Assembly: GCA_016748015.1 (NCBI GenBank)
Contig: JAAOMT010000620.1
Span: 160,940-224,939, forward strand
Reading direction: 5' to 3'
Source of the DNA: Geosiphon pyriformis uo1
Lineage: Eukaryota; Fungi; Glomeromycota
Length of the DNA: 64,000 nt
The position numbers and the translations under genes were made by a program. Positions 3,581 to 31,305 of the stretch are shown one piece after another. The notes under the pieces were generated by a model. The model was not told the DNA's origin. It saw only the letters and a list, made by a program, of their open reading frames with translations, and did not search any database. Numbering within the stretch: the first letter of the stretch is position 1; every line of letters starts with the position of its first letter.

Positions 3581-5029
3581 TTAACCATGTTCAAACCCTT
3601 GAAAATCAATATTTTCAAATCCCTCACAATTATTCATCAAAATCCCAAAGTAAGGACCTTGGTGCACAAAATCTTCTGGAACATCGCTGAAAGTTTGGCT
3701 GCCATTGCATATCTATCGATTAAGCAAACGCCAAAAAAAATTAAGAATTTCATGTTTCAAATATGATTACATTAAAAGAGTAACACTTACTTGACTCTCG
3801 CGATCAATTGCCGCTGCCCTACAAACATAATACTCCTCCCTTATATTATTATTATTATTATTATTATTATTATCCTCGCAGTTACAATCATTTGAAATTG
3901 GCTTAATCCATATCTCAGGATCTGAATGTGCCATCATTCCTTGAATACCAATAGGGAAATGAGGAACATGATCATTGCCATGAGTGACTCTAAGGATCCT
4001 GCTTTTATTAAGGTTGGTAGATCTTGCGAAACTTGGGTTTCCGACTCTTGGGGCGCCAAATGTAATCACCTGAAAGGGCATCAGTTTGTATAGTATGCCT
4101 AGATCCTTTTGAATTTGAAACAATTGGCCTACTAATGTTGCATAAGCTAAGAAATTGAAAGTAGTTCATTAGCTGGGATGTTATCTCTTGAAGATCAAGA
4201 CTATAGAATTTTCACTGAAAATACAAACCACCACCAACAGCATGCCCTATAAAATAAATCATGTCGACTTTAACCCTTTCGATTGCAAAAACATTATCAA
4301 ATTTTTGAATTATAAGAGGCCACATATACAGAACATCTTCCAGCCATTCTTGGTCTACTAAATTAAGAGTTTCAGACTCAGTTTCGAAATCTGGATGCTT
4401 AAATGGGACGAGTTTTGGTTTTCTTGAAATCCATTGTGATTTTGTCAATGTCTTAAAATGTGTTTTCAAGAACGGGTTAAAGTAGAGTCAAAGAAATTTG
4501 GGTTGAAATAATAATCAAGAGAAAATTTTCCGCGATAGTTTTTCAAACGTTAAATACCTTTCCTTTAAAGTAGATAAAAATATTTGAGGATGAGTGAGAA
4601 TTAGTCATAAAAACTCCTCCATGTGCTTTAAAAAGAGAATTTATAATTAGAATGTAAATCAATAGAAACAATATCAAAAGATCTTTTTTCTCATAATTTA
4701 CCCACTACACCATCTTTTCTAGCCAGTTCTCCAAAAATATTTTTTTGTGGCATGCAGTAACCATAATTTGCTATAGCTGCAAAGGATCGAAGACCCAGAG
4801 CTAGGCTCTTGGTTGAAATAATCGCTTCTTTTAATATGTGGCGAGGTATTCCTATATGGGTGAAGAAGTAGTTTAAATCGGACCAAATATTATCGTTTGT
4901 AGAATTGACTTGGTCATATTTTGATGCAAAATATTTCTCGTTCGAATTTGAAATTTCAAGATTCTTTGCAACAATAAAAAAGCTACCAAGAAATATCAAG
5001 AACAAATTCACGAAAAATAAAAATTTCAT
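3581..5029 (-). CDS. Secreted class-3 lipase-like protein, copy A (nucleophile Ser replaced by Ala); 5 exons, ~368 aa
   Basis: Hand-spliced GT-AG exons 5029-4702, 4625-4558, 4451-4229, 4146-3791 and 3712-3581 give an open frame. It has a signal peptide (MKFLFFVNLFLIFLGSFFIVA). Motifs IFIYFKGK, GHAVGGAYA, TFGAPRVGN, NDHVPHFP and FVHQGPYFG align with Rhizomucor-type lipase motifs IYIVFRGS, GHSLGGA, TQGQPRVGD, RDIVPHLP and DHLSYFG. Confidence 0.9.
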
Positions 5030-8000
5030 TCTTTCTCACAGAAAATTGTATTAATGGATTAACCTTTTATTGTTATCGAAATGATTATTTTTGGTTATGA
5101 AACAAAAATCGCATAAATCGCCCCTGATTGGAGCATATATACTAACGATGATGATGATTGCAAAATTTATGGGCGATTACCATTTTAAGGATTTTATTTT
5201 AAAGTTTACCATGTTTTGCATCTTAAATTTTTGATTATAGACCAGTTTCATCTTAAGGCTAAATTTTGGTTTTTAATAGCGAATATATTATAGTAAAATA
5301 ATCTTATCAATTACTGAAAAAGTGAGTTTTTGAAATGTTGACTTTTTTAATTCATTTTTATTTTTAAAATTATCTTTTTTTTATAAAATAATAAATGATA
5401 GACCACACTTTTATTTTTATTTTATAATTTTATGTGTAAATTTAGGTTTAGAAAGTAACAAAAATTCCAAAGGGAAACTATTAAAAATTTAAAGCTTAAT
5501 TTTTTTGGCCAAATGCTTTGCCTTTAATGTCTTTGAAGATTGTAATATGTTTCAGATTAATTAAATTCCAATTCTAGACTCTTCATTGACTAATAATAAT
5601 AACCAAAAAATTAAAGCAAACAAGCTTCTAAAGATATTTTTTAAAAATTTGTCATCTTAGAACAATAAGAAAGCAGAAAATTACTATTGATTAAACGTGC
5701 TACAAATAAATATAATACTTTATTTATAAATAATCTAAATAGTTTATCAAGATTATTGGAAGTGGTAAATTTTAAGCTAAATGAGATTTGTTGCAATTTT
5801 AATACTAGAATTACTATATTAAATAAAACATGTCAAATAAAAAAATAATTAAAATGTTAGTAGATATTTTGCCATTAATAAATTATTTGCATTGTATATA
5901 TTGTAGGTGTTTAATAGTTTTAATCGCATTTAATTTTATACTCATTATTAAAGCTAAGTTATATATAGTTAAAAAATGGAATAAAGTCAGTGGCTTTTGG
6001 TACTAATTATACAATCCTGTGTAATCGATTTGCAGCTAATTTTTTTTGGTCACAAACTGTAGTAAGGAATTCAAAGAAAAAGTCAGGCCACAACCCATCA
6101 TTCAATGTGGTGGGTCATACTTCATTAACTTATTGGCTTTTCTTTTTAATGTTATCATGTTATTTATGAAAATATAGCTGAAAATTAATTTATAGTAATT
6201 TTGAAAAAAATGACTTCTTGAAATTTTATTAGGATTAAAAAAAGTGTTTTAAAACTGATATCAATTTATTCATTATATATTAATTTTTTTTTATTCTTGC
6301 GTTCAAATTGAACATTGAAAAATTACAAATATTGATTCTGTTATCAAAGCCGCCTTTTTCACGCCTAAAAATTTTCTCAGGCATGAATTTAAATTTGGTG
6401 TTTAGAATCAAACACATTATGAATAAAATTATTTTATATTTGTATTGATTGTTCTCTTTTAGAATGAACATCTTTTTTATTATATAATTCAGGTTCAAAT
6501 GTTTTAATGACTCTGGATAAATTTCTCGGTCAATCTCAAGGAAAATTAATCTATTAGAGAAAATTTATAAGTATATTGGTCATGGATATTTAAATTCCAA
6601 AAAAGATTTATATTGTTTCTTATCAACCCTTAAAAAATATATATTTAATGACTATGAGCATTTTATTTTAACTATTTTTGAATATCAATGACTATTGTTA
6701 TTTTTGAATGATCTATAAAATTTATAATTTTTTATATGTTTCAAAACAATGTCAGTTTCAATAATTTTCAGCCTAATAAATGATATAAACAAAAAATAAG
6801 ATACAAAATCTCAAATAGATAATTTGCTTTGAAAAATTTTAAGCTTCTAAGGAGTTTTATTAATTAGCAAATTAAGCAAGAGTGTTGAAGATAATTAATT
6901 TGATTTATTAAGAAAGCTTTGAGTTACAAATTTTGGTTTCTACTGAACATAAATTAAACTATAGTAACAATAGAGAGAAATAATTTTGTTTCCTTTTCAG
7001 AACTTTAAGATGTGAGTAAAAGAAACACTAAAGCTAAAAACAAAAATTATAGGCATGTTCAATAGGTTTATTTTGCTATTGTTGAGGTTAATGAATGAAA
7101 TTAAAAAATAACTTGGTTTTTAATATAGTGAGTTATTTAGTCTTAAATATTAAAATAGGCATAAAAATATTTTGGTTTAGAATTTTAGACAAAACTACAT
7201 TTTTGGTCTCAAAAGACAATGAGAACTTTACTATTGTCCATGATTTTTTTGCTTTTGCTTAAAATATTGAATCTAATAAATCCCAATTCAATGAAAAAAG
7301 TATTTTTACAATTAAATTCTTTTCGTATGGCAAACTTTTCTATTATTTTTACAGACATTCAAGCATAAGGATAAACAATAAAAACTATCAAAAACTTTTA
7401 TTTCAATTGCTTGGAATACCCATTAGGGAAGAATAAGTTATTTAATAGTCATGTTTTATAGCTTTTCCTATTATATATAACCAAATTAATATTTAGGATG
7501 TCACCTTAGGAAAGAAAAATAAAATGTTTTTCTCCCATTTGTGAAGCAAGTTGGAAAAAAGAACATTTAAAAAAAAGTACTTATAAAATCTCCTCAAATT
7601 GAGAAAATATTTTGTTGAAAGTTTCGATTTGAACATTTCAATTTATTAGGACTTCTTTACTCTCTTATTGATGATGCAATGAGATTAGTAAATAGATAAG
7701 AATTTTGCTTTGAAAATTTTGACAAAGTTTTCGTCAATATTGACATATTTCTTTTGAAGTACTATAATCTTCTAGTGACTTGTATCACTTATTTTCAAAC
7801 AAAACTTTTGCCAAGGATTATTGGCCGAACTGGAAATGAAGCCTTGGAAGGTTCCCAATAATTTGCTTATTGAATGAGTTCATATCGAATTAAATCAAGA
7901 GCACCAATAATTTTAATATTCCTGATTCATTTATTCTTTTACAATTCATCAAATATGAAATTTCTTAGTATGGCTAAGAAATCATGAATTAATAATACAA

Positions 8001-8357
8001 AATTCGAATATAAATTAGGAGATATAATAATTTTCGAAAAATTTAATTGATTTTTAAGTTATTCTAAAATTTTGCGAATCTTTTATTTTGATTCTGTTGT
8101 CCAGAAAAAGAAAGTCTTTCCTTTACATATTTAAATATTTCCAAATTTTAAAAATAAGGTATTTTTGCCTTCTTGTTTATGATTAATTGAGAAATTAGCT
8201 TTGATTACAATTATGCCAAGTTACCTCTAAGCGGTGATGATCTATATGAGGCAAATTATTAATTTTTCTGCAGTGGGTTTATCATCTTTCAGGGGGTATA
8301 AAACATAAATAGCTTTCTTTTTAAGATATATTATTTTAAGCTTCTTATATCTTATCA

Positions 8358-9843
8358 ATGGCATCCCAACAACTCTTTCACACTTTATCTCACGATATTG
8401 GGAACTTATTGAATAATCATAATTTTTCTGATGTTAGGATTGTTGTTGGCAAAGTGCCTGATATTAGAACTTTTCATGTTCATTCACAAATTTTAGCAGC
8501 AAGATCCTCGTATTTTGCTATAGCCCTCTTTAGTAATTGTGTTAAAAGAGAAAATAACACTATCGTTCTTTCTAAGCCTAATATATCACCCCATATTTTT
8601 GAGATGATTCTTAGGTGATTATATTTTATTTGCTTGATATTTCTAATGATAACTATTTAAAAATTTTGTTTTATTTAGATACATTTATAGTGATGAAATC
8701 TCTCTTAATGAACACGGAGTACTTAAAATCTTAGAATTGCTTATTGCTGCTGACGAGTTTATTCTAGAACACCTTATTGACCACCTTGAGGATTATCTGG
8801 TTGAACACCATGCAAAAGAGTTGGAAGAAAATTTTGCCACTTTTCATGAGACATCTTTTATGCATCATTCGTTCAAAAAGCTACAAAAATTCTGCACTGA
8901 AATAGCTATCAACGATCCAGCAGCAGTCTTAAACTCTCAAGATTTTACCTCCCTTACTGAAAATGCTCTTTCTTCAATTTTAACCCGAGATGATCTAAAT
9001 ATAGAAGAATCTGAACTATGGGAAAAAATTGTGGAATGGGGAGTTGCTAAATTTGATCCAAAAATTCAGATGAATGAAGTTCTTAACTGGACAGATGAAA
9101 ACTTTAGCGCCTTTAAAGAATCTGTTGAAAGGCTTCTACCTTTAATCCGCTTCTTTAACATATCTTCAGTTGACTTTTATCACAAAGTAAAACCATTTGC
9201 GAGAATTTTACCTGGAACCTTATATGAAGATCTTTTACATCATTATCTCGTACCCGGTAGTCATCAAAAGTCTGTAGACGCTCAGCCATTACGATTAAAT
9301 GTTGATTCAAAGCTTCTTCAATTGCATGATATAAAACAGCTTGATCATTGGGTTCAAGGCAAAGACGAAAGCACTCCTCTTCAAAACAAACTTGCAAATG
9401 ATTTTAAATTACTACTTCGAGGCAGTCGGGACGGATTCTCACCAAATGATTTTCATCGGTTATGTGATGGAAAAGGAGCAACAGTTACTGTAATCAAAGT
9501 CAAAGGGACTGGTCAACTTATTGGTGGTTATACCCCAGAATCTTGGAACTCTTTAGGTTCATATATTAATGGAAAGGGAAGTTTTATTTATTCCCTTGGA
9601 GATGGCAAAGCTCAAAATGCTAAACTTAGTAAATTTGTTAAAGGAAGTGGACCTCTTGGTCATAAAAATCATGGGCCCCAATTTGGCACTAATATTCGAA
9701 TTTATAGTAATAATTTTCAATCTATTCCATGCAGTTGTAAAAAGGAATCAGATTATGAGCACACTATAATGCCTGGGTCAGAAAATAAAATGGTAGAATT
9801 TTTATTTGAAGAGTATGAGGTTTTTCACATCATTAAAAATTGA
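8358..9843 (+). CDS. BTB/POZ-BACK-TLDc domain protein (family expanded in Glomeromycotina), 2 exons, ~473 aa
   Basis: Exons 8358-8614 and 8679-9843 (GT-AG) join in frame (ILR-YIYS). BTB: FSDVRIVVG..FHVHSQILAARSSYF. BACK: RDDLNIEESELWEKIVEW..LLPLIRF. TLDc: FKLLLRGSRDGF..FHRLCDGKGATVTVIK..GGYTP..GPQFG..EEYEVF. Confidence 0.92.
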
Positions 9844-10493
9844 ATATGCTGTATCTTTTTTATCAAATTTAAAAAACAATTACTTTTTGATTGAAAAATA
9901 ATAAAATTTTTTTTTTAAAATGTATTATAAAAAAGAAATTAAATCAATCTTTTTAATCTGATAAAAATACCAATTACAACTCTTTTTTCTTTTTATAAAT
10001 TTTAAATTCTGTTCCTAATTAAAATTTTGTCAGTTTACTTTAATAAGATTTTTTAAATTGCAAATATATATATATATATATATATGTATAAATGCATCAA
10101 TTATCTTTAGTCCTTTGAAAAATTTTGGTAAATTTAAAAGTTAAAAATTAATTACCTTGGTAAATATAAATATTGCACATCTTTTCCGTTTTTTTATAGT
10201 GAATGTGATGTCAATTATAATATCGAATAGAACCAACATGTTAGAAATGACAAAAAAACTATTACCCTAAATGAATAAAATTTAATAAAATATTCGTTTA
10301 ATTTTAAAACTTTTAATAATAATTATCACCATCCGTATATATATACACTATTTAGCTGTAAAAAAAATTAAAAATACCTTTGGATTTTTCTTTTTTCCTA
10401 TAGAATATAAAGTTATTAATATTAATGCAGTAATAGCAATTGCAATTAACTTGAATTCGTTTTCTTGGCTAAAGAAATAGTGTAAGTATTAGG

Positions 10494-10494
<1 letters not shown>

Positions 10495-10536
<42 letters not shown>
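10495..10536. repeat. (GAT)n trinucleotide microsatellite
   Basis: Perfect GAT run, inside an apparent intron of the pseudogene. Confidence 0.95.
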
Positions 10537-10537
<1 letters not shown>

Positions 10538-11034
10538 TAATTTAATAGAAATCAAAAATTTTGAAGATTAAAGCATGATCACTCACGTTTAACTTCGAAT
10601 CCGTAAACATCATCTAAAAACCCCATATGTGAATAAATGCTAATGGAGGTCATTTGAAATTTCCATGGGATTTCTAGGAATCACTTGTTTTAAGTAATTT
10701 GAGGTCGTAATATTTCCCAGCCTGATGATGCTGATTTCGATTTATCCGTCTTATGATCAATGTATTCCTTTCAACTGGAATGGTTAAAGCTAATTGGTCT
10801 TTAAATTATCATAAAAAATTTATTGTTATTTCCACTTTCGGTGAAACTCAAGGTTCCGTTTTGATTGAGACGCAAAAGTCCAATAAGTGTGGCTTAAAAA
10901 TCAATGACAATCATTATGTATTTTAGTTAGATAGCGACATTTAAAATTTTCTAAAAGAGAATAAACAATAAACCTTGGTTACCTGCATGTTTGCCCTCTC
11001 GTTTTCTTTGCTCTAAAGGATTCGATTCAAAGGA

Positions 11035-11238
11035 AATGAACGAATGAACGAATGAACGAACGAACGAACGAACGAACGAACGAACGAACGAACGAACGAA
11101 CGAACGAACGAACGAACGAACGAACGAATGAACGAAGGAATGAATGAATGAATGAATGATCGAACGAATGATCGAACGAGTGAATGAACGAATGAATGAT
11201 CGAACGAGTGAATGAACGAATGAATGAACGAACGAACA
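11035..11238. repeat. Compound (GAAC/GAAT)n tetranucleotide microsatellite, ~200 bp
   Basis: Directly visible; it explains the spurious SFVR-repeat ORFs on the minus strand. Confidence 0.95.
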
Positions 11239-14200
11239 AATCAATAAATAATTAATATGTATGAAATTAATTCCCATATAGCAAAAATAAGTACATTTAC
11301 AATTTACCTGTTTAAAATTACCAAATATTTTTACAAATTCCCTTGATAGCTTTATTGAATTGTGCATCTTTCACAAAATTATTCTTGACGACGATAAAAT
11401 AATTTTTATCCAGTTGATTAAATGTGATTTTTAATACTTCCACTATAACGGTTTTCTTATCCAAATCCATACGACAATTTCTTTCCAGATATATTTTACT
11501 TCGAAATCGGTTCAGTCTCATTTTTCTTGATAAATAGAAATATTATTATTGGTTACTGAGATTTCGTTTGAAATAAGTGATTATTATTTCGCGCCGACCC
11601 AATGAAATTTGCTTTTTACGAAGAGGGGAAGTAGTTTCGATAAAAGAATTTTCATAACCAATGTCAATTCAAATGAAAAATATTAATGAAAAACATAAAA
11701 ATCCACAAAAACACCACATGTCATTCAAATCTTATCTTTTCTTGAAAAATATGGTAAATTCTTGGAAAATAGTTTCTCCCAATGTAGCAGCCGAGAAAGT
11801 ATTGTTTTTTAAGGTGATCCACATAGATTTTGAATTCTGTGAAACATTTCATAATCAATGCGTTTTCCATATTGGTCATCTAAATATTATATTCAAAATA
11901 TCCGCATCGTCCGATCTATTGATTATAGTCAATTGCCCGCTATAAGGCAATTGATATCTACTTTGTTCTTAGCCAGATTACTTATCGTGTCATATCTTAA
12001 TACTAGACCACTTTTAAGAAATGATATATTTTTCAGTTCCAAATTTCTTTTCTAGGAAACAATAATAACCCAAATTATCCGTTTGAACACTACATTTCAT
12101 AATCCACAATTTATTTGCATTCCTATTGATCGAATAGAAAATGAGGACCCAAAATAAACTGTTCCTGGATCCAAAAATGTGACATATACGGGATATTTTG
12201 TCATGTTTCTACTGAAGGAATCATAAATAATATATATGCAAACCCAAAGCCTCCTTCAGTTGTGACAAAAGAGTAATTCGATGTTAAATTTCTTTTTAAA
12301 TCAAAGCTTTTTAGGACTAAAGATTGTATTGATTTTTTCATTAGATTTAGTTCTACAAACAGTGTAAATTGAATGTTTAAGATTATTGAGGTTCATATTA
12401 AAATATTTTCAAATCTTATATTTATAAACTTACGATGCATTATAAATAGTCCACACTATCATGTCATCCTTCGACTGTATATAATTCGAGATAAAAATTT
12501 TCTCTCCTTGAATATTATTTCTTAGATTATCTATCTGGTTTGAAAATGCAAATCAGTTTTTAAAAATAGCCTTTTGAAGAGCTTATCAGGGTCATCATTA
12601 AAGATTAAGATTCAAATTAGGTAAGAAAACATTTAATAAAGAATCCATTGTAAACTGTGTTTTATATAATTTTCTCATTTGCAAACCTTTTTTTTAGAGA
12701 AGTAGAAGTTCATTTGTAGTATGATTCGAACAATTAACTTGAAGGTTTCGAAGGGTTTTGATTTATATACTCTCAATAATTCAAATAAAATTTTGACCCC
12801 ACTAAATCCTAATCATTGAAGAAATTTTATTAGGTTAAAAATTTCAGCCTATTTAAAATAAAAAAGTGAATACTAGTTTAGAAATGAAATGCAATGCAGT
12901 TAATCAATCATTTTTCACCTTATAATTAATTCATATTTCATTAAATTTCAATTTTTTAAACAGCTTCTTTTTACTATTTCTAATAAGAAAATATCTAAAA
13001 AATTATTTAGTATTCCTTTTCTGTTGAATTTTTATTTTTCAAGTATAATTTTTAAATTCCTAATCTTCCTACTCCTGATACTCCGACTAATGCGGAAGGA
13101 AATAGAGTTATTGACCTTACTGAGTATAAGTCTAATATTCAACACAATTTAACTCACGAGACAATATTAAAAAAAACTTTCGCTCATTGACGAAGAAAAA
13201 AGTATATTTCTTTCCGGTAGTATTATGTTTTGAATGAATGTGTCCTAAAAAAAATTGGTGGTTGCAAGTTAGGTAACGAAAAATTATAAGGATTACCATT
13301 TAAGATTATATTTTACCAAATTAAAAATTTTGATTGCCCTTTAAAATAATTGCAAAATAGATGATGAAATCTATTCTCCCATGAAAAGAAATGAGTGAAA
13401 ATTTTAACGATTAAAAACTTTAAAAAGTCTTAATCCAAGATAAATCTAATAATTAGCAAAGAAAATATAATCTAGAAAGCTCACACTTCTCAAGTTAAAC
13501 TTGACATTAAAAAGCCTTTCAAAATAGTGTGATAAATCCAGACACCGACTAGAAGATATTTCACACTAAATGAATATAATTATTTTAATCCTGAATTTTT
13601 AATTAAAAATAAAAGACCATTGTGAATATCCTGAATATTTGAACACAACTAATTGATTTTGAAAAAAAAATTTCTAACCTTATTAATTCTTTCCTTATTT
13701 TGAATAAGTATAAAGCATAAGCATACTCATATTTTTTTATAAAATTTTTCAAGACAAACTATATTATTGTTATTCTTTTGGATCTTATTTCCATGATAAA
13801 TTGAAATTTGCAAAAAATTGAAAATAAACATTGAGAAATAATTTAAAGAAAATATCTAAACCTTTCAATAAAATTTGAAAAATTTTTTTATTAAAAGATC
13901 ATTTTTTTAAAGTTTTTATTATATATATTATGATTATGATCATAAATTTTTTTTAAAAGCTGAAAATAAAAACTATAATATGATATATTATTTTTTATCT
14001 TGATAATCAAAATTTAAAACAAGTATTTTGATTGTATTATAAATTAGAAAAGCTTTTTTAGAATAATTTCATTTATGCATTTTGATAATGAATGTGAAAA
14101 TACTGTTTTTTTTTTGAAAAATAAGAAAAATATATTTATATATTTGATGCTCTACAATAATAATTATTAATTATAAATAGCATTGTTTATAAATTTACTT

Positions 14201-14269
14201 AAATTTAGAGATTATCTCTTGGAGGTTTTTATACATTCTACTGAAAAATTGATTTTTTAAAACGGTTTC

Positions 14270-15680
14270 AATACATGGTCATATTTAGACCGGCTTTCAA
14301 TTCCAGCAAATTTTTCAGCAGCAGTCGCAAAACTATTTCACTACTTTTATTATTCCCTGGCCTTTTTAATTGGTCATTCCAAGATTAAAATTGCAACTTT
14401 TCATCAGAGACCGATATCCTCTACTGCCTTTATTAAATTATTGCTCCCAATTTTTATACATTTCACTATTGAGCAGCAGTAGCAACCTGATACCATTCCA
14501 CTGGCTCTTTAAAGATTGACTCCAATTCATACATTAAACCTTGTCTGAATTACGCCATTGTATAATCTTGTTTAGCAGCAGACCGATACTACTTTACCGT
14601 CTCTTCAAATGATTTTTCCTCTTGTTTATTTTATACATTTATTTTACCCCATTTTTGCAGCCTTCTGGGGAATTTTTTTGATTGCTTCAATCTCTTCTTT
14701 AACGTTGAATATAGTCGGACGATCTGTTATAAATTTTTATTCCAAAGTTAAAAGTTGAATTATTTTACCAGTTTGCTTACCATTGATATTTCCTGTCTAA
14801 CAATTTTTATAAAGCTGAACATAAGAAGTATTTAACCGATCTCCTATTGCAGTTTTGAAAATTGCTAAACAATTTTCTCTTAAACCTGGGCATGATCGTT
14901 CACACAGTTTTGAAACGGAGGACAACCACTTCCAATTTCACATTACAACAAGAACCTCAATGAATATGTACCGGAAACTGCTGTATGTCTATATGTCTTA
15001 ATGTTTTATCAGACCAGTGAGGATGGACTATTCCAAAGACTTTTTAATCCAAAATCGCTCTATCATCATTTATGAGTAATGAGGTGATAAAAATTAGTTA
15101 ATAAAAATTCAATCCTTCTACTCATCAAATATCTATCCTTTGGGATTATATCTAGGCCAGTTTTAAATTTTTCATCAGTTTCGGTACAGTTGAACGGTAG
15201 TCAGTCTGCTTAAAAAATCTCAAAGAGCGTTTCCGTTTGCTGCATATTGCAACACAAGGACCAAATCTCCATTCGTTTCTCTAATGGAACATAATTTCAA
15301 TATCATATTCTCATTGAAAAATTAAAAAGCAATTATTCATATAAATCTCTTAAAAACCTTTTTGGCCACTTCAAAAGGTTTTATGATTTTTATCAGTCAG
15401 CGTTCGTAAAGTTTTTCTCTTCAAAATATATTTGGGATTATTGAGACAAAAAAAGATATCTAATAAAATACCTTACGCTTGAAATTTCTTTTCTCTTGAG
15501 GTGTGTTCAATCTGAAAATTTGGTTTCAATTCCATTGCCTTTTATTTACCAAGCCTTTCTTGTTCAATAAAAGTATACTGAACAAAATTTATTGATGTTT
15601 TAAAAAGTTCCATCTTAAGATTCGAGCAAAATCTAATTTAGAAAACGATAACTTTTTAGATTATTCCCATTTTTGGGCTA
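14270..15680 (-). pseudogene. Decayed TKL protein kinase plus Sel1-repeat gene
   Basis: Minus-strand remnants in order: ETNGDLVLVLQYAANGN, DFG, EIGSGCPPFQN, YVQLYKNC*TG, DRPTIFNVKEEIEAI, then Sel1-like VK*YRSAAKQDYTMA*FRQGLMYEL and VEWYQVATAAQ. Many stops and indels; boundaries approximate. Confidence 0.72.
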
Positions 15681-16835
15681 TTATTTATTGCAGCTACCCC
15701 AATTTTTGATACACGTCAAGCCAAGGTGGAATAAAAATCTCACGACGACTGATATCTAATGCAGAAATAAGGTTCAAATCATATTTTTATTCTTTTATTA
15801 TATAATATTATTAGACTTTAGAAAGTAGATTTTTTAATAAATTTTATTGAGTATTGCAACACTTTCAAAAATTTATTTAACTTTATTAACCACACTGATC
15901 CAACAAAGTTTTTTAATGAAATTTGATTTTTTAAAATGCTTAATTGATAAAAATCATATTACAATATTTTTATTTTAAATAAAATTTCTGCTATAAATTT
16001 ATTGATAATTTTTGATTAGAAAAATAGTTGTACATTTTATGCTTTCAAAAGTTATTAATTGGTGTGTTTTTTCAAAAAAAAACTTTTGCATATATTTTCA
16101 TTTAAAAATATGTCATTAACTGTTTTCCAATTTATGAGAGACTTTCAGAAAGAAGATCCAATAGCTATGAAAAATTTTGGATTTTTTTACAATACTTACA
16201 TATATTACAAAATAATCTATCGAAAACATTTGTTAAGATAAATAAAAGGTTTTCACTAAACTTTTATCATAATGGTTTACAAAATAAAAATTATTAAAAC
16301 TCTTGAAATAAATTAGAAATGAGATTCTATTATGGAATTCTAAAGCATAAATTTTAAAAGTAATTAACCTTTGAACTTCAAGAAAAGATCTTTTTAATTG
16401 GTGTAGAGACAGTCTAAAAAGATATTAATTTTCAAGATTCAAATTTACGTTTTTTGGTTTCTTCACGAGTGAATTTAAAACGATACATGAATTATTGAGT
16501 TTTTTTCAAATTGAAATAATTAATAAACTTTCATTTAGTGGTCAATAAATGAATATTTGCATAATCTATTATGAAATTAAAAATTAAAAACTCTTCTTTA
16601 ATTATCAGGGATTAATCATAAAAATTTGACTGAATATTTTTCATTGGTTTTAGCTAATTAAAAAACCTTTTTATTTTTAAATCAAAATATTAGAATAAAC
16701 CCAGATATTATCATCGTCTAATATATATGACCTATTCCAGGGTCGATTTACGCTATTTTTGTTTCATAACCAAAAACAATCATTTCGAATAACAATAAAA
16801 GGTTAATCCATTAATACAATTTTCTGTGAGAAAGA

Positions 16836-18275
16836 ATGAGATTTTTATTTTTCGTGAATTTGTTCTTGCTATTTCTTGGTAGCTTTTTTATTGTTGCAAA
16901 GAATCTTGAAATTTCAAATTCGAACGAGAAATATTTTGCAACAAAATATGACCAAGTCAATTCTACAAACGATAATATTTGGTCCGATTTTAACTACTTC
17001 TTCACCCATATAGGACCACCTCGCCACGTATTAAAAGAAGCGATTACTTCAAAAAAGAGCCTAGCTCTGGGTCTTCGACCCTTTGCAGCTATAGCAAATT
17101 ATGGTTACTGCATGCCACAAAAAAATATTTTTGGAGAACTGGCTAGAAAAGATGGTGTAGTGGGTAAATTATGAGAAAAAAGATCTTTTGATATTGTTTC
17201 TATTGATTTACACTTCTAATTATAAATTATGTTTTTAAAGCACATGGAGGAATTTTTATGCCTAATTCACACTCATCCTCAAATATTTATATCTATTTTA
17301 AAGGAAAGGTATTATTTAACGTTTAAAAATCACCTTGGGAAATTTTATAAAATTTTATTTGATTATTATTTCTACTTTAACCCGTTCTTAAAAACACATT
17401 TTTAGACATTGACAAAATCACAATGGATTTCAAGACAATCAATACTCGTTCCATTTAGACATCCAGATTTAGAAACAGAGTCCGAACCTTTTAATTTGGT
17501 AGATCAAGAATGGCTGGAAGATATTCTGCGCATGTGGCATCTTATAGTTAAAGAAATCGATAATGTTCTTGAAATGAAAAAGTTTGAAGTCAGCAAGATT
17601 TATTTCATAGGGCATGCTATTGGTGGTGGTTTGTATTTTCATTGAAAAATTCTATAGTCTTGATCGTTAAGAGATAACATCCGAGCTAATGAAATACTTT
17701 TAATTTCATAGCTTACGCAACATTAGCAGGTCAATTGTTTTCAATTCGAAACGATCTTGACATAATACACAAACGGGTGCCCTTTCAGGTGATTACGTTT
17801 GGTGCCCCAAAAGTCGGAAACGAGTTTTTCGCAAAATCTACCAACCTTAATAAAAACAGGCTTATTAGAGTCACTCATGGAAATGATCATGTCCCTCATT
17901 TCCCTATTGGTACTCAAGGAATAATGTTTCATTCAAATCCTGAGCTATGGATTAAGCCAATTTCAAAGGATTGTAACTGCGGGGATAATAATAATAATAA
18001 TAATAATAATATAAGGGAGGAGTATTATATTTGTAGGGCAACGGCAATTAATCGTAAGAGTCTAGTAAGTGTTACTCTTTTAATGTAATCATATTTGAAA
18101 CATGAAATTCTTAATTTTTTTTTGGCCTTTGCTTAATTGATAGATATGCAATGCCAGCCAAACTTTCAGCAATGTTTCAGACAATTTTGTGCACCAAGGT
18201 CCTTACTTTGGGATTTTGATGAATAATTGTGAGGGATTTGGGGATTTTTATTTTCAAGGGTTCGAACATGGTTAA
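16836..18275 (+). CDS. Secreted class-3 lipase-like protein, copy B (Ser replaced by Ala); 5 exons, ~367 aa
   Basis: Exons 16836-17163, 17241-17308, 17406-17628, 17712-18064 and 18144-18275 give an open frame with a signal peptide. Motifs GHAIGG (GCT at 17616-17618), TFGAPKVGN, NDHVPHFP, FVHQGPYFG. Confidence 0.9.
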
Positions 18276-19253
18276 ATAGTAAAATTTTAGCTTTTGCTTG
18301 ATTCCAAAATATAAAAAATTAAAATTTTATCGTATTATAATTTTAGAATACTTTCAATAAATAGCAATACATTTAAAAATGAATTTAAAAAGGTGAATCT
18401 AATAAAGAATTTAAAAAAATGAGTAAGAATATAATTCGTAAGAGATATATTTCTTAAAATATTTTTTTGTTTTAAATCAATTAGATTAAGTTTCAATTTT
18501 TTAACCCTGATCGTTTATTTAGATTTTAAAATTGAATGTTTTAATCGAGAAAAAAACTAAAATGTCAGGGCAATTTTTTCTCATCGTTTAAATAATCATT
18601 TAAAATCTTTAAAATTTTCTTTGAGCCAAATTTATTTGATAAAATTATTTGAAACACTCCTTTTTTATTGGTTTTCATTAAGATTAAAAAATTTAAATAA
18701 GATTCACTAGAATTACCTCAAATTTTTGAGTCAAACATTATAATTTTAGAGTTTATTGATTTTTTTATTATGTTAAATCTATCTTTTATCAAGGCTTATC
18801 ATTTTAGTAAATGATTGATAGAAAAAAAGTAATTTCATTTCTATTTAAAATATTGAACTATGAAACCCTTTTTTGTTAGTTAAAGGTTTTTTTTCTAACT
18901 TTGCCTTTTGATTAGCAAGCATATATCATATTTTTCTAATAATTATATTTAATCTTAAAAATATTAAAAAAAATTATTTAATATAAAATACAATTTTTTT
19001 TTAATACATAATTCCATGTAATTTTGGGATTTTTCTAGAATATAAAAAAGGGTTAATGAAATGATGGGCAATCAAGATTATCATGAAATCACATTTTTCT
19101 CGCAAAAAATTGAAAAACAAAAAGCTATCCCTGCCTCTTTTCTGTGTGTTTGTAGCTGATATTTATCAAATTATAGAAACTTAGTTTCATTTCAAAACCA
19201 AAATCATTTATTCAATTTTTAAACAAAAATGTTTCTCATAACTTAAATTTAAA

Positions 19254-20675
19254 ATGTGGTTTTTTAAAAAATTTCTTTTGATGACTTTTTTAAATTTTTT
19301 AATTGTTGCAAAGAATTTAGAAAATTTAAAAAGAGAAAATATTCAACTCAAGTCAAATTTGAATCATAATTTTTTGGGATTAACTATAACTAACAATAAT
19401 TTCTCACATGTAAATCAAATATTTTCCGAATTATTTCCACCTTTTAAATTATCGAAACGAAGGATCTCATCGCAAAGCTTAATGGTTTTAAGTTTTCCTT
19501 TCTACGCATTCATAGCAAACCATGGTTATTGTACGCCAGAGAAGAACATATTCGGAAAAGAGATTGAAAAAGAAGATGTAATAGGTACATTGTAACGAAA
19601 TCATCATTTTTTAATCAAGTTTTATTATTCTATTTATATAAATTTTTAATTTAAAGCACATGGAGGAATTTTTTTTGCCGAACCGAATCTTCCATTTTTA
19701 CGGTCAACAATTTTTATATATTTTAAGGGAAAGGTAAACTCATAAATTCCTTATTTTGAAATATTTTTCTAATCTAAATCCTCTGACACTGCTAAAAACT
19801 TGAATTTAAACAAATTTTAGACATTAACAAAATCAGAATGGTTATCAAGAGAACCAATACTCGTTCCATTCAGATATCCAGGATTACAACCCGAACATTC
19901 TGCGTTGGTAGATCAAGAATGGTTACAAGATATTTTGAAAATATGGCCAGTCATTATTGAAAAGATTTCCATGTTCATCGATAAATTTGGGCAATTACCA
20001 ATTGACGATATTTATTTAATTGGGCATGCTATTGGTGGTGGTGTGTATATCAATTCCATTTTTTCATATAGTTTTTATCTGCAAAAAATATTTGAAATAA
20101 TTGTAAAAAATTCACTTTTCTTTATAGCATACGCAATATTAGCAAGTCAATTATGGGAAATTTATATTAAAAAATTAAGTAACATCCATCCTAAATATGA
20201 GCAGATTTCACTTCGTGTAATAACATTTGGTGCTCCAAGGGTGGGAAACAAACATTTTGCCCGACTTACCAACCGTAATATAAACGAGAATTATCGAATA
20301 ACCTATGGAAATGATCATGTTCCACATTTTCCTATTAATATTCCAGGAATAATGGAACATTCCAAAAATGAGATATGGATCAAGCCAATTGAGAATAACT
20401 GTGATTGTGATAATTGGGGAAATAACAAAACTGAGCTTGTTGATGAAGCAGAATATTATCTATGTTATGGAAACAATCAGGTAAATTAAAATACATGAGC
20501 TTTTTTCAGAAATAGTTTTAATATTCAAACTTTATTCCAATAGGACTGTAATAATGGTCAAAGTTTAGAAAATATTGCAGATAATTTTATCAATCGAGGA
20601 CCTTATTTTGGTCATTTGATGGGTGAATGCCAGGGATTCCAAGCATTTAATTTTCAAGGATTTGATAAAAAATAA
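19254..20675 (+). CDS. Secreted class-3 lipase-like protein, copy C (divergent; Ser to Ala, and His to Asn at the putative catalytic His); 5 exons, ~370 aa
   Basis: Exons 19254-19584, 19657-19733, 19821-20040, 20128-20480 and 20544-20675, with the same intron positions as A/B/D. Motifs GHAIGG (GCT 20028-20030), TFGAPRVGN, NDHVPHFP, and FINRGPYFG in place of FVHQGPYFG. Confidence 0.88.
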
Positions 20676-21503: not shown

Positions 21504-21782
21504 TTATTTTGTAAGGAACAAGCCAACTATTATTATTCCTCTTTTTTTCCCAAATGCACAAGCACATTTATCATTACCCAGAATTAGTGTAGGCTTATAA
21601 CAATGTGTAGTAAGCAGAATATTTTCTATCTTCTGACGTTTGCAACTAACTGCTGTTGCTTTTCTCTTGCATTTCTTACCCATTTTGACGTTTTCTTCGA
21701 TGGTAGGCAGCTCTTCTCTTTTGGATTCTGTGAATGAAGACAGTATTAATAGCAAGAATATTGTGAAAATTTCATATTTCAT
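21504..21782 (-). CDS. Candidate small secreted basic Cys-containing protein (~92 aa), possibly truncated
   Basis: ATG at 21782; signal-peptide-like MKYEIFTIFLLLILSSFTES followed by KR; 5 Cys, Lys/Arg-rich. No homologue recognised. Confidence 0.4.
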   Translation of the reverse strand: MKYEIFTIFLLLILSSFTESKREELPTIEENVKMGKKCKRKATAVSCKRQKIENILLTTHCYKPTLILGNDKCACAFGKKRGIIIVGLFLTK

Positions 21783-22851
21783 TGTTGAAGAAACCACAAA
21801 TTTTTTGGAATTGAGGGTACACAGGGTGGTACCACAATAGAATCATTTATCTGTACATATTTTTGTGAATAAGTAAAATAAATACTATATTCATTATTAT
21901 GTAAATCATTTAACAGTTTTAATAGTTACAAGTCAACAAGAGCGATATGCATTACTAAACAAATTAATTAGTATTTTTATTAATTCATCGATAAAACTTT
22001 AAATAAAAATGAATTAGCATATGTTCTATTCTAATTATTTATGAAAGTTATCCAAAAAAAATTTCAGTATAAAATTATAAGAATCATTAAAAATAAGAGA
22101 ATCATTAAAAATAAGAGAATAGATAAATTTGGCTTGAAATTTATAATTTTTTTTAAAAAAAATTTTGTCTGTTTTTATTCTTTTAATTAATTAATTTAAT
22201 TTAGAAATCATTCATTTTATCAAATTAATTTTTCCATGTTAAAAAATAGAAATATTAAAAATAAACTAAAAATTAATTTGATGAATTAAATTATTTTATA
22301 AATATGTATTTGTTTTAAATAACTAATTTTCAATTATTATTTCCTATTTTTAAAATTTCAAATAAAAAAACCTTTATACTTTATTTTTTATGTAGGATTT
22401 TTCTAATCACAGATAATCTAAGCCGCGATCGGTAATCATTTTATTGATACTTGTGGCTGAAGTGTTAACTTAATGCTAAGCAAACCAGTGCCAAAGAACT
22501 AAGCCTTCTCGTTTTCAACAGATTGTTTTCAAGTGGGAGATTTTCAATGACATCAAAAATCATACAAGCCACCTAAATAAAATTATGTGAGGAAGAGGGA
22601 AAGCTTTCATTTATACTCTCTTTATTAATTATTTAAGCTTTGTTCCTTGAAAGTTGATGATTTCTGCCTTATCGAATAATTTGAAGTTTGAATTATATTT
22701 AAATAAATTAAAAGAGGGATTCAAATATTAAAAGGAAAATTTTATGATTGGTATCAGACGGCAGTCAAAAACTGGGACTTGACAACTTTTATTTTTTGTG
22801 TGAAGTAATATAATTTGATTTCTTTAATAAATTTTAATAATTTACAAAAAT

Positions 22852-23820
22852 ATGATACAAAAATTTCAAAATTCAAGTTATTCACGTTCAAAGTTTTATA
22901 TATCTAAAAATATTTTATTCAAATCCATTATTCATTGTTTCCCATCACTCTTCATAATATTACTATATCTTCTCATTTGCACTATCTTTTACCCACAACC
23001 TTTAACCGCACAAAGAGCATCATGTAATGATAGAAATGATTGTAAAAAAGGGCAAGAATGTCGATATTTTTCAAACACATCCCTCAACTCAAATTCAGAT
23101 AGCATCTTGATAACAGGATATCAACAATGTGTATGGCCATGTAAGGCTTCCATCACATGTCCAGGAAATAGTGATTGCATTTCTGGAATTTGTCAAGAGG
23201 GTGACGATAAACAACAAAATCTCGATCCAAATTTCAAAAACAGCATCTCTAATTCTACTGATATATCATCATCATCATCATCATCATCATCCGAATATGT
23301 GGAACCAGCGACAGTCAAAGATCATTCGTTTCAAACTATTTTTTTCATTTTCATAAGTCTTGTCGTGGCTTCTGGTCTAGGATTTTTTATATATTGGTTC
23401 CGTCGTCGTCAAATGCGTATTCATCGATTTCATACCCTTGTCAACACTGCGCGAACTTCAATTATTGAGACAGGTGGAACCACTGGATCTGAACGTACTG
23501 CAATGGAAGAACAACGAAATGAAGGTATGCCTTTTTTGAATCTTCCTGCTGGTATGTCTCATGACATTATCGATCGAACTTCGTTAGATGAGGTGGTACG
23601 ACAAACGACCAACACTTCTCATGAAACCATCCGTGTTGGAGTGGTTAGCACCGGGGTTGCTATTCGTGGTGATTTAGATGAGTCAGGAGCGATGGAGACT
23701 AACGTTTATGTAGATAACACCATGCCAGAGCATCCTAATCAAAGTACTGATTCTATTGATATGGCACGGGAGGCAGTTTTGTCAGTTGAACATGAACCCT
23801 ATAAAGATCTTGACAATTAA
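22852..23820 (+). CDS. Single-pass membrane protein with Cys-rich ectodomain (sensor/receptor-like), 322 aa
   Basis: Intronless ORF with an N-terminal hydrophobic segment, 8 clustered Cys (CNDRNDCKKGQEC...C and CKASITCPGNSDCISGIC), a Ser-rich stalk, a TM segment (IFFIFISLVVASGLGFFIYWF) followed by RRR, and a low-complexity cytoplasmic tail. Confidence 0.8.
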   Translation: MIQKFQNSSYSRSKFYISKNILFKSIIHCFPSLFIILLYLLICTIFYPQPLTAQRASCNDRNDCKKGQECRYFSNTSLNSNSDSILITGYQQCVWPCKASITCPGNSDCISGICQEGDDKQQNLDPNFKNSISNSTDISSSSSSSSSEYVEPATVKDHSFQTIFFIFISLVVASGLGFFIYWFRRRQMRIHRFHTLVNTARTSIIETGGTTGSERTAMEEQRNEGMPFLNLPAGMSHDIIDRTSLDEVVRQTTNTSHETIRVGVVSTGVAIRGDLDESGAMETNVYVDNTMPEHPNQSTDSIDMAREAVLSVEHEPYKDLDN

Positions 23821-25445: not shown

Positions 25446-27076
25446 ATGACACTAACATTACTTCGAAAAATTTTTCAACGACAAAATATAAACCTCCAAA
25501 GACATATTATACTGATAAATAAACCACAACGTTTAGCATATTCGAGTACTAAAGATAAAATTTTTGAATACGAAAAATGTACTCCATGTAAACACAAACC
25601 AAAGCGTGACGAATGTGATCGTTTAGAGTGGTGTGGTCAATGTGCTTACAACTTCTCCCAAGAGAAAATTCCTAACTATCTTAGCAATGATCCTATCATT
25701 GATAACTTCATTAAAGATATGCAGCTTCAATCAACATCTCGGAATGGATTTATTCACTGGATACCTTTTAAAAATTTTGAGAATAAAGAATTTTTAGGTA
25801 ACGGTGGTTTTGCAGAAGTATTCTCAGCGACTTTAAACAATTGGCCTTGCATCGGATTCAAGAAAACTGTTGTGAACCCATTTAATATCGATGAATGGAG
25901 CAATAAAAGTGTTGTTTTGAAAATCATGAAAAATGGTCACAAGATTAGTAAAGATTATCTCAAACAGGTATTAAAATTTTTGGTCATTTATTACCACAAA
26001 GCTTTATTTCAAAATATATAACTTCACTAAATTATATTTTATTGAGGTTGAACCCACAATCAAATATAATTTTGAAATCATGAGATTTTATGGGTTTACT
26101 CAGGCAAGCTATCTCGATCGAATGATTATTTGGCTTGGCATATGAAATAAGCTTATTTAACTTTTTGAATTAATAATTTAAGGATCCAGACACCGGAAAC
26201 TATGCCATGGTCATGAAAAAATACAAAAAAGACTATCGTAGTTACCTTAAAAATCCACCTCGAATAGATTCCTGGCGCGAAAGATTCTCTAAACTACAAT
26301 ATATTGCAGATCGTTTAAGAAGCATTCATGATGCTGGATATATTCACTGCGATTTTCATACTGGCAACCTCTTTTATCAGAATTATCGATTAGGTCGAAT
26401 TGGGATCTGTGATTTTGGAATGTGTAAACCAGCAAATTATGATTCGTTAGCCACAAATATAACAACAATTTATGGAGTGCTCCCTTATGTTGCTCCTGAG
26501 GTTCTTAAAGGCCAACCGTATACAACTGCATCTGATGTCTACAGTTTTGGTATAGTGATGAATGAAATAGCCTCTGGTTATGCTCCTTTCCATGACCGCA
26601 ATTATGATGCTAGTCTTTATCACGACATTATCAAGAATGGCCAAAGACCACTCATTACAAAGGGAACACCTGAAGCAATCAAGAAATTAATCCAAGATTG
26701 TTGGCACACCGATCCAAATGAACGGCCAAATCTAAAGGATATTGTGATGCACCTTAGACAATTGGAATTATATCAAATAAAGGATATAGAAATTTACAAA
26801 CAATTTAAAGTGGCCGATAACTGGGAAAAGCTCAATTCACGATTGACCGGATACTACTTTAAAAAGGAAAGAATTTTCAGCCAACCAATTATTTCTTATC
26901 CTACTTCTTATGCCACTGTTAATTTGGATAATTCAAATCTATCAACTAATTCAGGTTTTATATTCTATATTTAAATTCTTTCATTAATTTTTTACCAGTG
27001 TATAAATTTTAACATATTCTTATTTTTACTAGTTCCGATTACTATTTTATTGGAAAACGCAAAAGAAAATCGATAG
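25446..27076 (+). CDS. Tyrosine-kinase-like (TKL) protein kinase, non-RD, with N-terminal CxxC..WCxxC segment; 4 exons, ~464 aa
   Basis: Exons 25446-25967, 26047-26103, 26183-26954 and 27033-27076 (last exon less certain). Motifs GNGGFAEV, VVLK, FYGFTQ|DPDTGNYAMVM, HCDFHTGN, DFG, YVAPE, DVYSFG, CW..DPNERP. Confidence 0.9.
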
Positions 27077-27399: not shown

Positions 27400-28900
27400 T
27401 AAAAGCTTTTTAAAAGTCAAAACTTTGCAAGATTTGTTTTATTATTTTAAAAAATTTTTTAGGTTTTTTATATAATTATTATAAAAACAAACTACTAATA
27501 TTAAAATAATTAAAAAAAATAATTTATTATATCTAATTTAACTATATTTATATACTTATAAAAAAACATATTTTTTACATATTATTAATTATTTAAACCA
27601 GTTAAAATTATTTTACAATACTGTATAATTTAATATATATTTATTTATTTTGCAATTTTTAAAATTAATATAATAGCTTTTATTACTTAAAGTATTTATT
27701 ATTATTATTATTATTAAAACTTTTATATTATAATTAACTTATTTTATTATTATTAAAATTTATTTTATATATATTTTCAAAAACATAATATAATTAATAA
27801 ATAATTCACATTTTAATTTTTTGAAAATAATATTTTTTTATCAAATTTTATAACCATAATTATTAACAACAAAGAAAAAAAATTATTTAAAAATTATCAT
27901 AGACTTAACAATTTTTAACATGGTAAAAAAAGTAATTTAATTTTGATAAAATAATCAAAAAATTTTAAAATGTAAAGTCTATATTGTTTTTAATTACCAA
28001 TTTAAAACCAACAAAACTATATAACAATTAAAATATAGTTTATATATAAGTTAATTTTATTTTTGGAAAAACATCAAGATAAAAGCCAACCAATCAAAAA
28101 TTTTTAATAAATAATAATAATTTTTTAGCTCTTAAAAATTATTGTTGAAAAATGTAATAACATTAAATAAAAATAATATTGCTTTAATGTTTATAACATT
28201 AATTAAATTTTTAAAATTGGTAATAATATTAAATAAAAACATGTTTTAAAATGCAAATTGTTTATTTTTTATAATAAATAATTAATCAGAAATAATTACA
28301 GTAAATAACACAGCCAAAAGGTAATTTTTGTTTATTTTATTACATGTATTATTGCTATTATTGTCCAAATTAGAAATATTTTTATTGTTTACAACCAGTT
28401 TTTTAAAATTGATAAAACAGAGCTGGTAAAAAAAGTAATTGAATCGAAGCTACTTTTTCTAAAAAAAAAGCAGATTAACAATAATATTAAAGTTTTTAAA
28501 AACACAAAGCTGTCGTTTTGAAAAATACAAAAAAAAATCTTTGTTAAAAATATTAATGATTATTAATATTAGTAGTTTTAGGCCATTTTATTTTTTCTAG
28601 TTATTTCAAAAATAATAGTAGTTGTAGTAATTATTGCAAAAATTGTTAAAAACTTTCAGTGAAAAAAAAAAGTATTTAATAATAACTAAAGATTCTTTTA
28701 AATTTTATTATTTAATAAATTGGTATTTTATTACAATTTTGTAAAGATTATCAAGCCACATAAAATCAATATAATATAATATATTAAATTTTGTGTTTCA
28801 ATACATTTTAATATCTGAAAGGTCTGTTCAACTATATTGATATAATTTAACCTTATATTAGCTAGATCTGTTAAAAAAAATACAGTATTAAAACTGTTTA
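27400..28900. repeat. Very AT-rich, C/G-depleted segment, probably a heavily decayed repeat
   Basis: Composition only: few G/C and almost no CpG. No motif could be identified. Confidence 0.35.
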
Positions 28901-29817
28901 TTCAATTATATATATGAAGAAAATATCCATTAGATTAACTTATTTTCAAATAATAGTAATAAAAAATAATTTTGATGCTTTGGAACTGAATTAAATTTAT
29001 TCTAAAGCGAGGTCAGTCAACAAAATTTCCTAATGATTGAATAAATCTTAAAATTTTATTTTTTCATCGAAAAGGTGATATCAGGCTCAAATTTTCTAGT
29101 GTCAAAATTAGACTTTGCTATATATATTTAAAAGCAAAGCCAAAAAATTATAAGAGTTGTTTTAAAATTCATTTTGGACGAATCTATAAGAGAGGCCAAA
29201 AAATTTAGAGAATTGTCATCTGGACGATTCAAAAGAATTTTCCTCAGAGATTAGATTAGAAATATTATTATTACCTTAAACTAATATTTAGTAATTAACT
29301 TGGACGCGAGTAGTTCAAATAATTAGCTAAACAAATTCGGTTAAAAGAAAATGGTAAAATTTTCAATGATTATTTGAACGATGAGAAAAAATTTTCCCCA
29401 ACATTTTTTCAAGCTTTTTGTTTTTTTCTCGATTAAAATATTTAATATAAAATTCACATACACGATAAAGATTGAAAAATTGAAGTACAAACTTAATAAT
29501 TTAAAGCAAAAAATATTTCAAGAGAAAAGATTGGTTTAATTCAAGATTAAAATTCACAGACTAAAATTATCTTTTTATAGAAAAATATCCTTTTCAAGTA
29601 TAAGGAAATATAACTTTCGAATTGTATTTTTACTCAATATTTTAAACTCTGTCATTTTATACATAGATTTGACCAATTTATTAGATTCCTCTTGTTAAAA
29701 TACATTATCAAAATGTAATGTTAAAGAATTTCGGATTATACCTTAATTTAAGTTTATTTATTGAAAAGCATTTCAAATTATAATATGACAAAACCTCAAG
29801 TTTTCAAATTTTACTAT

Positions 29818-30079
29818 CTAAATATTTTTGAACCCTTGAGAACCAAATTTCCCAAATTCCTCACAATCATTCATCAAAACCCCAAAGTAAGGACCTTGGT
29901 GCACAAAATTGTCTGAAACATCGTTGAAAGTTTGGCTGGCGTTGCATATCTATGGATTAAATAAAGCCAAAAAAAATTAAGAATTTCATGTTCCTAATGT
30001 GATTACATTAAAAGAGTAACACTTACTAGACTCTCGCGATCAATTGCCGCTGCCCTACAAATATAATACTCCTCCTTTA

Positions 30080-30121
<42 letters not shown>

Positions 30122-31305
30122 CATTATCCCCGCAGTTACAATCATTTGAACTTGGCTTAATCCATAGCTCAGGATTTGAATGAAACATTGTTCCTTGAAT
30201 ACCAATAGGGAAATGAGGGACATGATCATTTCCATAAGTGACTCTAAGGATCCCCCTTTTATAAGGGTTGGTAGATTTTGCGAAACTTGAGTTTCCGACT
30301 CTTGGGGCACCAAATGTAATAACCTGAAAGGGCATCAGTTTGTATAGTATGCCTAGATTTTTTTCAATTTGATATAATTGGCCTGCTAATGTTGCATAAG
30401 CTATGAAATAAAAGTATTTCATTAGCTCGAATATCATCTCTGAAATCAAGACTATAGAATTTTTCAATGAAAATACAAACCACCACCAACAGCATGCCCT
30501 ATAAAATAAATCTTTTTGATTGCAACCTTTTTCAATTCAAAAGCATCATCAAATTTTTGAATTATAAGAGGCCACATATACAGAATATCTTCCAGCCATT
30601 CTTGATCTACTAACATAGAATTTTCAGACCCAGTTTCTAACATTGGATGCTTAAATGGGACGAGTTTTGGTTTTCTTGAAATCCATTGTGATTTTGTCAA
30701 CGTCTGAAGATGTGTTTTTAAGAACGAGTTAAAGTAGAGTGAAAAAATTTGGTTTGTAGTAATCAAAAAAGACTTGAGATAATTTTCTAATATAGTTTTT
30801 CAAATGTTTAATACCTTTCCTTTAAAGTAGATAATCATATCTGAATCTGCTATAATTTGATGAGGGTCATTCACAAAAAATCCTCCATGTGCTTTAAAAG
30901 AAGTTTTATATTTAGAAATTTTAATTAATTGAAATTTCAATAAACGATTTTAAAATTTTTCTTTTCTCATAGTTTACCCACTACGTCCTTTTTTCCAACC
31001 ACTTTTCCAAACATATTTTTTTGTGGCATGCAGTAAGCGTAATTTGCTATAAATGCGAAGAGTCGAAGATCTTTAACTAGCCTGCTTTTTAAAGTAATCG
31101 CTTCTTTTAATACAGGACGAGGTAATCCAAAATGGGTGTAAAAATAGTTTAAATGGGACCAAATATTATCGTTTGTAGAATTGACTTGGCCATCTTTTAA
31201 TGCAATATATTTCTCGTTTGAATTGGAAATTTCAAAATTCTTTGCGTTAATAAAAAGGCTGCCAAACAGTAGCAAAGAAAAGTTTAGAAAAAGTAAAACT
31301 TTCAT
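29818..31305 (-). CDS. Secreted class-3 lipase-like protein, copy D (Ser replaced by Ala); 5 exons, ~377 aa
   Basis: Exons 31305-30978, 30891-30815, 30703-30481, 30400-30027 and 29949-29818 give an open frame with a signal peptide. Motifs GHAVGG (codon 30491-30493), TFGAPRVGN, NDHVPHFP, FVHQGPYFG. Confidence 0.9.

Follow-up and report, generated by a model that had tools for sequence, protein, structure and literature searches.

What remains for a secreted lipase to do once its nucleophile is gone? The question is raised by a locus of the fungus Geosiphon pyriformis, on contig JAAOMT010000620.1 of assembly GCA_016748015.1. The window, by which we mean the whole stretch of DNA analysed, comprises 64,000 nucleotides (nt), and all coordinates given here are window positions. 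It contains four class-3 lipase genes, called A to D, in which the catalytic serine is replaced by alanine. They turned out to belong to a large family that has mostly lost this serine. With a probability of about 0.5, we consider the products of A to D to be putative non-catalytic, secreted ligand binders at the interface between fungus and microbe.

Four genes with alanine at the nucleophile

In a six-frame scan of the window, the motif G-H-A-[VI]-G-G occurs at these four sites only. Each copy has five exons and an open frame; the introns are all of the GT-AG type, have the phases 1, 0, 1, 0 and lie at identical positions. Identity amounts to 70-80% among A, B and D, and to 48-49% between C and any of these. 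The Pfam profile Lipase_3 (PF01764) matches exon pieces with 45.8 and 39.7 bits, the curated cut-off being 22. In all four copies FKGK replaces FRG[ST] and VDQEW replaces VHxGF, and six cysteines are retained. The triad Asp is present in all of them, the triad His in A, B and D, while C has Asn in its place. A preliminary description of this DNA had already listed four intact five-exon genes with shared intron positions, a GCT (Ala) codon at the nucleophile and the said motif changes, and the gene models and codons bear it out. It did not mention that C has lost its triad His. Its signal peptides are a less clear-cut matter: a hydropathy heuristic detects a hydrophobic N-terminal segment in every copy, yet a weaker one in C.

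The public annotation conceals the family: it merges B with C and overlooks signal peptides. Its model of copy A, NCBI G9A89_022402, lacks the signal peptide and exon 2; the contig of this model agrees with window positions 1-14917 at 100%. G9A89_022404 (P0155, 602 amino acids; 16836-20675) has B as its first and C as its second half; it omits both signal peptides and exon 2 of C, and reads through the 87-nt in-frame intron 3 of C.

The alanine is real. Unspliced DNA contigs of run X1 agree with the nucleophile codons of B and C. For B, a contig of run X3, which stems from a second study, joins exon 3 to exon 4 with the 83-nt GT-AG intron removed; it shows one synonymous difference and an intact Ala codon. 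For C, a contig of run X2 lacks introns 1 and 2, has 0 mismatches and spans the unchanged Ala codon; the RNA contigs thus speak for separate exons 1-3 in C, and a loose end of 5 nt is compatible with splicing of intron 3. A separate X2 contig carries the exon 4-5 junction of A, its 11 differences from B being those of A. The runs are labelled as DNA or as uncertain, yet the exact removal of introns points to RNA. A, B and C are transcribed, and an assembly error at the nucleophile codon is ruled out for B and C by DNA and spliced contigs. The preliminary description had proposed a check of expression and cDNA: A, B and C proved to be spliced, and Ser was not seen at the codon of B or C.

The fold was modelled for B with AlphaFold (AF2) from P0155:14-318 and a 140-sequence alignment. 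The predicted local distance difference test score (pLDDT) is 88.9, with the lid helix at 75-80, and the predicted template modelling score is 0.91. The comparison with Rhizomucor lipase, likewise proposed beforehand, gave a match to 3TGL with Z 25.8; Rhizopus lipase 6A0W reached Z 26.6, and the root-mean-square deviation of these matches is 2.5 over ~244 residues. EDS1 and PAD4 rank below these fungal enzymes (Z 16-19.5). The model thus predicts a Rhizomucor-type alpha/beta-hydrolase fold with a lid helix. The best PDB sequence match of the paralogue P0001 is 1GT6, the S146A mutant of Thermomyces lipase with oleic acid, and a search of the ESM Atlas returned generic class-3 lipases only. In A, B and D, an in-frame AAT microsatellite (3843-3873, 17985-18010, 30080-30122) forms a poly-Asn loop of 7-15 residues after CxC; its length varies between the three copies and its pLDDT is low.

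By established lipase chemistry, canonical serine hydrolysis is excluded in A to D, because nucleophile and oxyanion side chain have both been lost, in C also the His. An alternative nucleophile at the elbow is not apparent: the alignment contains no family-specific conserved Ser or Cys there. Instead, family-specific conserved switches align to the lid and pocket of the Rhizomucor enzyme (R81, D104, W107 and Y147, joined in the Ala branch by K69 and K75). They suggest a binding site that was retooled to become more polar or basic, rather than an interface for neutral lipids. The basic lid would fit an anionic ligand better than capture of a neutral lipid.

A serine-less family and its history

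Relatives were gathered by phmmer with exon references and by two word searches; they number well over a hundred, a count that is not genome-wide. Of the 109 members in the alignment, 70 have Gly in the nucleophile column, 24 have Ala and 10 have Ser. Where the preliminary description suggested a tally of GHS versus GHA, Gly is thus the commonest residue among these members. The triad Asp is kept in 109/109 members, the triad His in 88/101. At the oxyanion position Pro (42) and Lys (21) prevail, and DxEW stands in place of HxGF; the position is S/T in 31/31 of the aligned Ser-type lipases. Family members are mutually only 25-35% identical and ~25% identical to active lipases.

All members with a named source, 75/75, are from Geosiphon pyriformis, which suggests that the family is Geosiphon-specific. 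The class-3 lipase matches of Rhizophagus, Gigaspora and Funneliformis read GHSLG; Ambispora and Archaeospora were not searched directly. Geosiphon itself also has normal secreted-type lipases with GHSLG and full motifs (G9A89_019636 and G9A89_010118). P0118, a Ser-less sequence of Logan run ERR6349559, was considered as a member from outside; it keeps FRGSV, scores low and was treated as independent. The same run (L003:39-2876) encodes a protein of 945 amino acids with two Lipase_3 domains (GHGFGG/GHGLGG), apparently an independent loss of Ser to Gly.

A quick tree with support from the Shimodaira-Hasegawa-like approximate likelihood ratio test (SH-aLRT) was built with the nucleophile column removed; its deep forks are poorly resolved. 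The 108 family rows form one clade apart from the Ser-type lipases (SH-aLRT 100), with the signatures GGAYA and GPYFG, and A and B lie within a ten-member all-Ala clade (SH-aLRT 97). The deepest family branches carry Gly; Ala is nested in Gly lineages, with 8 changes on the tree. The likely order of events would be Ser to Gly, amplification of the family, then Gly to Ala. A founding single step from Ser to Ala is disfavoured by the nesting and the 8 changes required.

None of the 9 Ala-branch genes examined at the codon level has Ser. The intron positions, the GCT codon and a signal peptide recur in five further paralogues of the Ala branch, which lie on other contigs. P0001, P0156, P0009 and P0003 (L001, L005, L006, L007) have unannotated in-frame signal peptides ahead of the start that NCBI assigns (10001/6001), and their four introns lie at the same positions.

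The Ser-bearing members are P0023, P0025, P0045, P0078, P0087, P0127, P0141, P0149, P0153 and P0174. They occupy at least 5 separate places in the family and lack the FRG[ST]/VHxGF set. Their Ser is probably a reversion from Gly or Ala. Being scattered and devoid of the oxyanion motifs, they indicate that the column accepts any small residue. Several NCBI models (P0011-P0013, P0026, P0027, P0097) have more than one serine-less domain, namely two or three. They could be true tandem proteins or fusions like G9A89_022404.

Duplication, selection and the surroundings

A, B and D arose from a cassette of ~2 kb, made up of ~130 nt upstream, the intron-containing gene and ~400 nt downstream. Over their initial 450 nt, A and B are near-identical, with 13 A- or B-specific versus 79 D-specific sites; the remainder is star-like. 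These 5' 450 nt are apparently a conversion tract between inverted copies.

The ratio of nonsynonymous to synonymous substitution rates (dN/dS) was estimated with our own GY94 implementations of codon models, not with PAML. Pairwise ratios are 0.43-0.45 against C and 0.86-0.98 among A, B and D, with dS resembling intron divergence; among A, B and D, dN is roughly equal to intron divergence. A branch comparison of nine genes yields 0.225 outside the trio A/B/D and 0.90 within it (p=2e-10). Purifying selection acts on the Ala branch outside the trio. Binning alignment columns by their conservation in the wider family splits the trio value into 0.10 for conserved (p=6e-7), 0.88 for intermediate and 1.84 for variable columns (p=0.006). 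Stops and frameshifts were not found in A, B and D; of the neutral simulations at the observed divergence, 0/20,000 stayed free of stops (mean 10.3 stops). Indels number 14 in 366 intron columns and 3 in 1134 coding columns, the latter all in frame. Random-site models give p=0.04-0.06 for M1a vs M2a and p=0.005-0.01 for M8a vs M8, most sites falling into the omega=1 class. The trio keeps the fold and changes fast elsewhere, which fits diversifying selection or, in part, relaxation.

The preliminary description had spoken of an old, selected and amplified family. Selection and amplification stand; the family, however, extends far beyond four genes and mostly went from Ser to Gly, and A, B and D are young. 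A dN/dS near 1 had been named as a sign of recent pseudogenes. The average of A/B/D (~0.9-1.0), not reported there, does come that close, but the site-partitioned tests show selection and not the drift of a pseudogene.

Table 1. Positions of the lipase copies, their active-site codons and other features of the window.
Feature	Position	Strand	Length	Details
Copy A	3581-5029	-	368 aa	exons 5029-4702, 4625-4558, 4451-4229, 4146-3791, 3712-3581
A, nucleophile codon	4239-4241	-		GCT, Ala203
A, triad Asp	3973-3971	-		kept
A, triad His	3664-3662	-		kept
Copy B	16836-18275	+	367 aa	exons 16836-17163, 17241-17308, 17406-17628, 17712-18064, 18144-18275
B, nucleophile codon	17616-17618	+		GCT, Ala203
B, oxyanion position	17306-17308	+		Lys
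B, triad Asp	17885-17887	+		
B, triad His	18192-18194	+		
Copy C	19254-20675	+	370 aa	exons 19254-19584, 19657-19733, 19821-20040, 20128-20480, 20544-20675
C, nucleophile codon	20028-20030	+		GCT, Ala206
C, triad His position	20592-20594	+		AAT, Asn; 2/3 triad residues gone
Copy D	29818-31305	-	377 aa	exons 31305-30978, 30891-30815, 30703-30481, 30400-30027, 29949-29818
D, nucleophile codon	30491-30493	-		GCT, Ala206
D, triad Asp	30227-30225	-		
D, triad His	29901-29899	-		
Duplicated cassette	16707-18660	+	~2 kb	also 3149-5155 and 29293-31416, opposite orientation
BTB/BACK-TLDc protein	8737-9843			
Tyrosine-kinase-like protein	25446-26974			
Sel1-repeat protein	36565-37605			
EF-hand mitochondrial carrier	47736-49935			
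Cyclic-nucleotide-monophosphate (cNMP)-binding protein	63259-63753			

Two open reading frames without a Pfam match lie between C and D: a Cys-rich one of 322 amino acids that resembles a single-pass membrane protein (22852-23820), and a small Cys-containing one with a signal-like start (21504-21797). The stretches 32000-37000 and 57000-62000 have 10-25% GC, are skewed and contain remnants of reading frames without Pfam matches. These AT-rich stretches are probably decayed repeats.

Possible functions and known systems

Being selected and expressed, the proteins have a function. Which one? A secreted class-3 lipase would early have lost its Ser to Gly, the family would have been amplified, and the branch of A to D would then have switched from Gly to Ala. 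The fold, the lid helix, the Asp (with or without His) and a pocket remodelled to be more polar or basic could bind a lipid-like or other amphipathic ligand and leave it intact. The most probable place of action would be the symbiosome or the outside of the cell. The task would be to recognise, sequester or carry lipids or surface molecules of bacteria, Nostoc or others, with the young copies diversifying their variable positions. Copy C is transcribed without Ser and His, and 1GT6 demonstrates that this fold can hold a lipid in the absence of the Ser. Several points weigh against non-catalytic binding. The triad Asp and His are kept in 109/109 and 88/101 members, so that some residual chemistry is possible; the signal peptides were called from hydropathy alone; and what the random-site models yield in favour of positive selection is marginal and can be inflated by gene conversion.

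The host is a fungus of the Glomeromycotina that houses Nostoc inside its cells (PMC13315312), and its lineage is devoid of fatty-acid synthesis genes (PMC9453076). The symbiotic interface invoked in the preliminary description is thus borne out insofar as the fungus is symbiotic, and has to be shifted as to the partner, which is Nostoc and not a plant root. Tentatively, and with the odds well against it, one may go further and see in the family a large, diversifying repertoire of putative binders for cyanobacterial lipids or surface molecules, i.e., a system of partner recognition or lipid acquisition for the endosymbiosis, in which A, B and D are shifting their specificity. The family offers concrete, expressible candidates for Nostoc recognition or lipid transfer.

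It is unlikely, though still to be taken seriously, that the family consists of bulk proteins of low specificity (storage proteins, lipid carriers, components of the bladder wall or matrix) that are comparable to insect yolk proteins and subject to birth and death, A, B and D being relaxed duplicates in which the fold alone is selected. The ratio of 0.90 in the trio, as opposed to 0.225 elsewhere, the similarity of dN to intron divergence and the majority of sites at omega=1 speak for it, as does a genome consisting of 64% repeats (PMC9453076). Variable columns above neutrality (1.84; M8a vs M8) and pocket switches conserved throughout the family do not agree with it.

Rather unlikely, in our opinion, are serine-independent enzymes, whose Asp-His dyad would act as a general base on water or on a bound substrate. 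Hod, a dioxygenase with an alpha/beta-hydrolase fold, may serve as a model of such a dyad. The idea draws on the persistence of Asp and His at a mere 25-35% family identity and on the new conserved polar residues close to the pocket. Yet the expressed C has another residue instead of the His, as does P0003, and both genes belong to conserved branches; the Asp sits in a structural motif, and more than 100 paralogues of one enzyme are hard to account for. Moreover, triad residues of EDS1 can serve a ligand pocket instead of catalysis (10.1101/2021.12.15.472806).

To the same low degree we believe in protein-binding decoys or regulators, which would absorb lipase inhibitors or defence proteins, or act as partners of the active lipases G9A89_019636 and G9A89_010118. 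Geosiphon has indeed kept these secreted-type lipases with full motifs, the excess of amino-acid changes at variable positions is compatible with an arms race, and the lipase domains of the EDS1 family operate in protein complexes. A decoy, however, should look like the active enzyme, and ~25% identity with an altered lid hardly qualifies; nor is any partner known. Recent pseudogenes or an assembly artefact, to which the overall dN/dS of A/B/D near 1 might point, are scarcely credible in view of the lack of stops and frameshifts, the value of 0.10 in conserved columns, the spliced transcripts and the Ala codon confirmed in B and C by spliced and DNA contigs.

Pseudo-lipases as such are already known; a large, predicted-secreted class-3 family of them in one fungus would be a new variety. 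In the literature searched, which did not cover the two Geosiphon genome papers, no serine-less family of fungal class-3 lipases is described. Malar et al. (2021) reportedly found Lipase_3 domains to be over-represented in the G. pyriformis genome. That the Lipase_3 expansion is mostly catalytically dead changes its meaning. The locus of A to D adds a derived Ala branch with the likely order Ser, Gly, Ala, the expressed C without His, and an accelerated trio.

How do putative binders of this kind compare with known systems? With the fungal class-3 lipases (3TGL, 6A0W, Thermomyces lanuginosus) they share the fold, the lid helix with its Trp, a signal-like N-terminus plus pro region, TFGxPRVGN, DxVP, the triad Asp and usually the His. 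Unlike these, the Geosiphon copies have no nucleophile Ser, Lys for the oxyanion S/T and VDQEW for VHxGF, and the family displays basic lid residues, an added CxC and a large amplification in a single species. The GHAxGG elbow is also found in S146A lipase of T. lanuginosus (1GT6) and in S133A FaeA of Aspergillus (2BJH), which, according to their PDB titles, hold oleic and ferulic acid, respectively, uncleaved. Those, however, are point mutants from the laboratory in which the site is otherwise unaltered, whereas the change in Geosiphon is natural, fixed and accompanied by remodelling of the pocket. In plants, EDS1, PAD4 and SAG101 use the Lipase_3 fold without hydrolysis, and their pocket has been proposed to bind small molecules (10.1101/2021.12.15.472806). 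They are not the closest relatives: they are intracellular, have an EP domain and few copies, and EDS1 has the full triad; the Geosiphon copies are single domains of 370 amino acids with an N-terminal hydrophobic segment. Dipteran yolk proteins and the venom lipases of Pteromalus puparum are secreted, have incomplete triads, are expanded in their clades and have been proposed to bind host lipids and carry them (PMC7240578). They differ in belonging to the neutral and acid lipase families, in occurring in animals and in their far smaller expansions.

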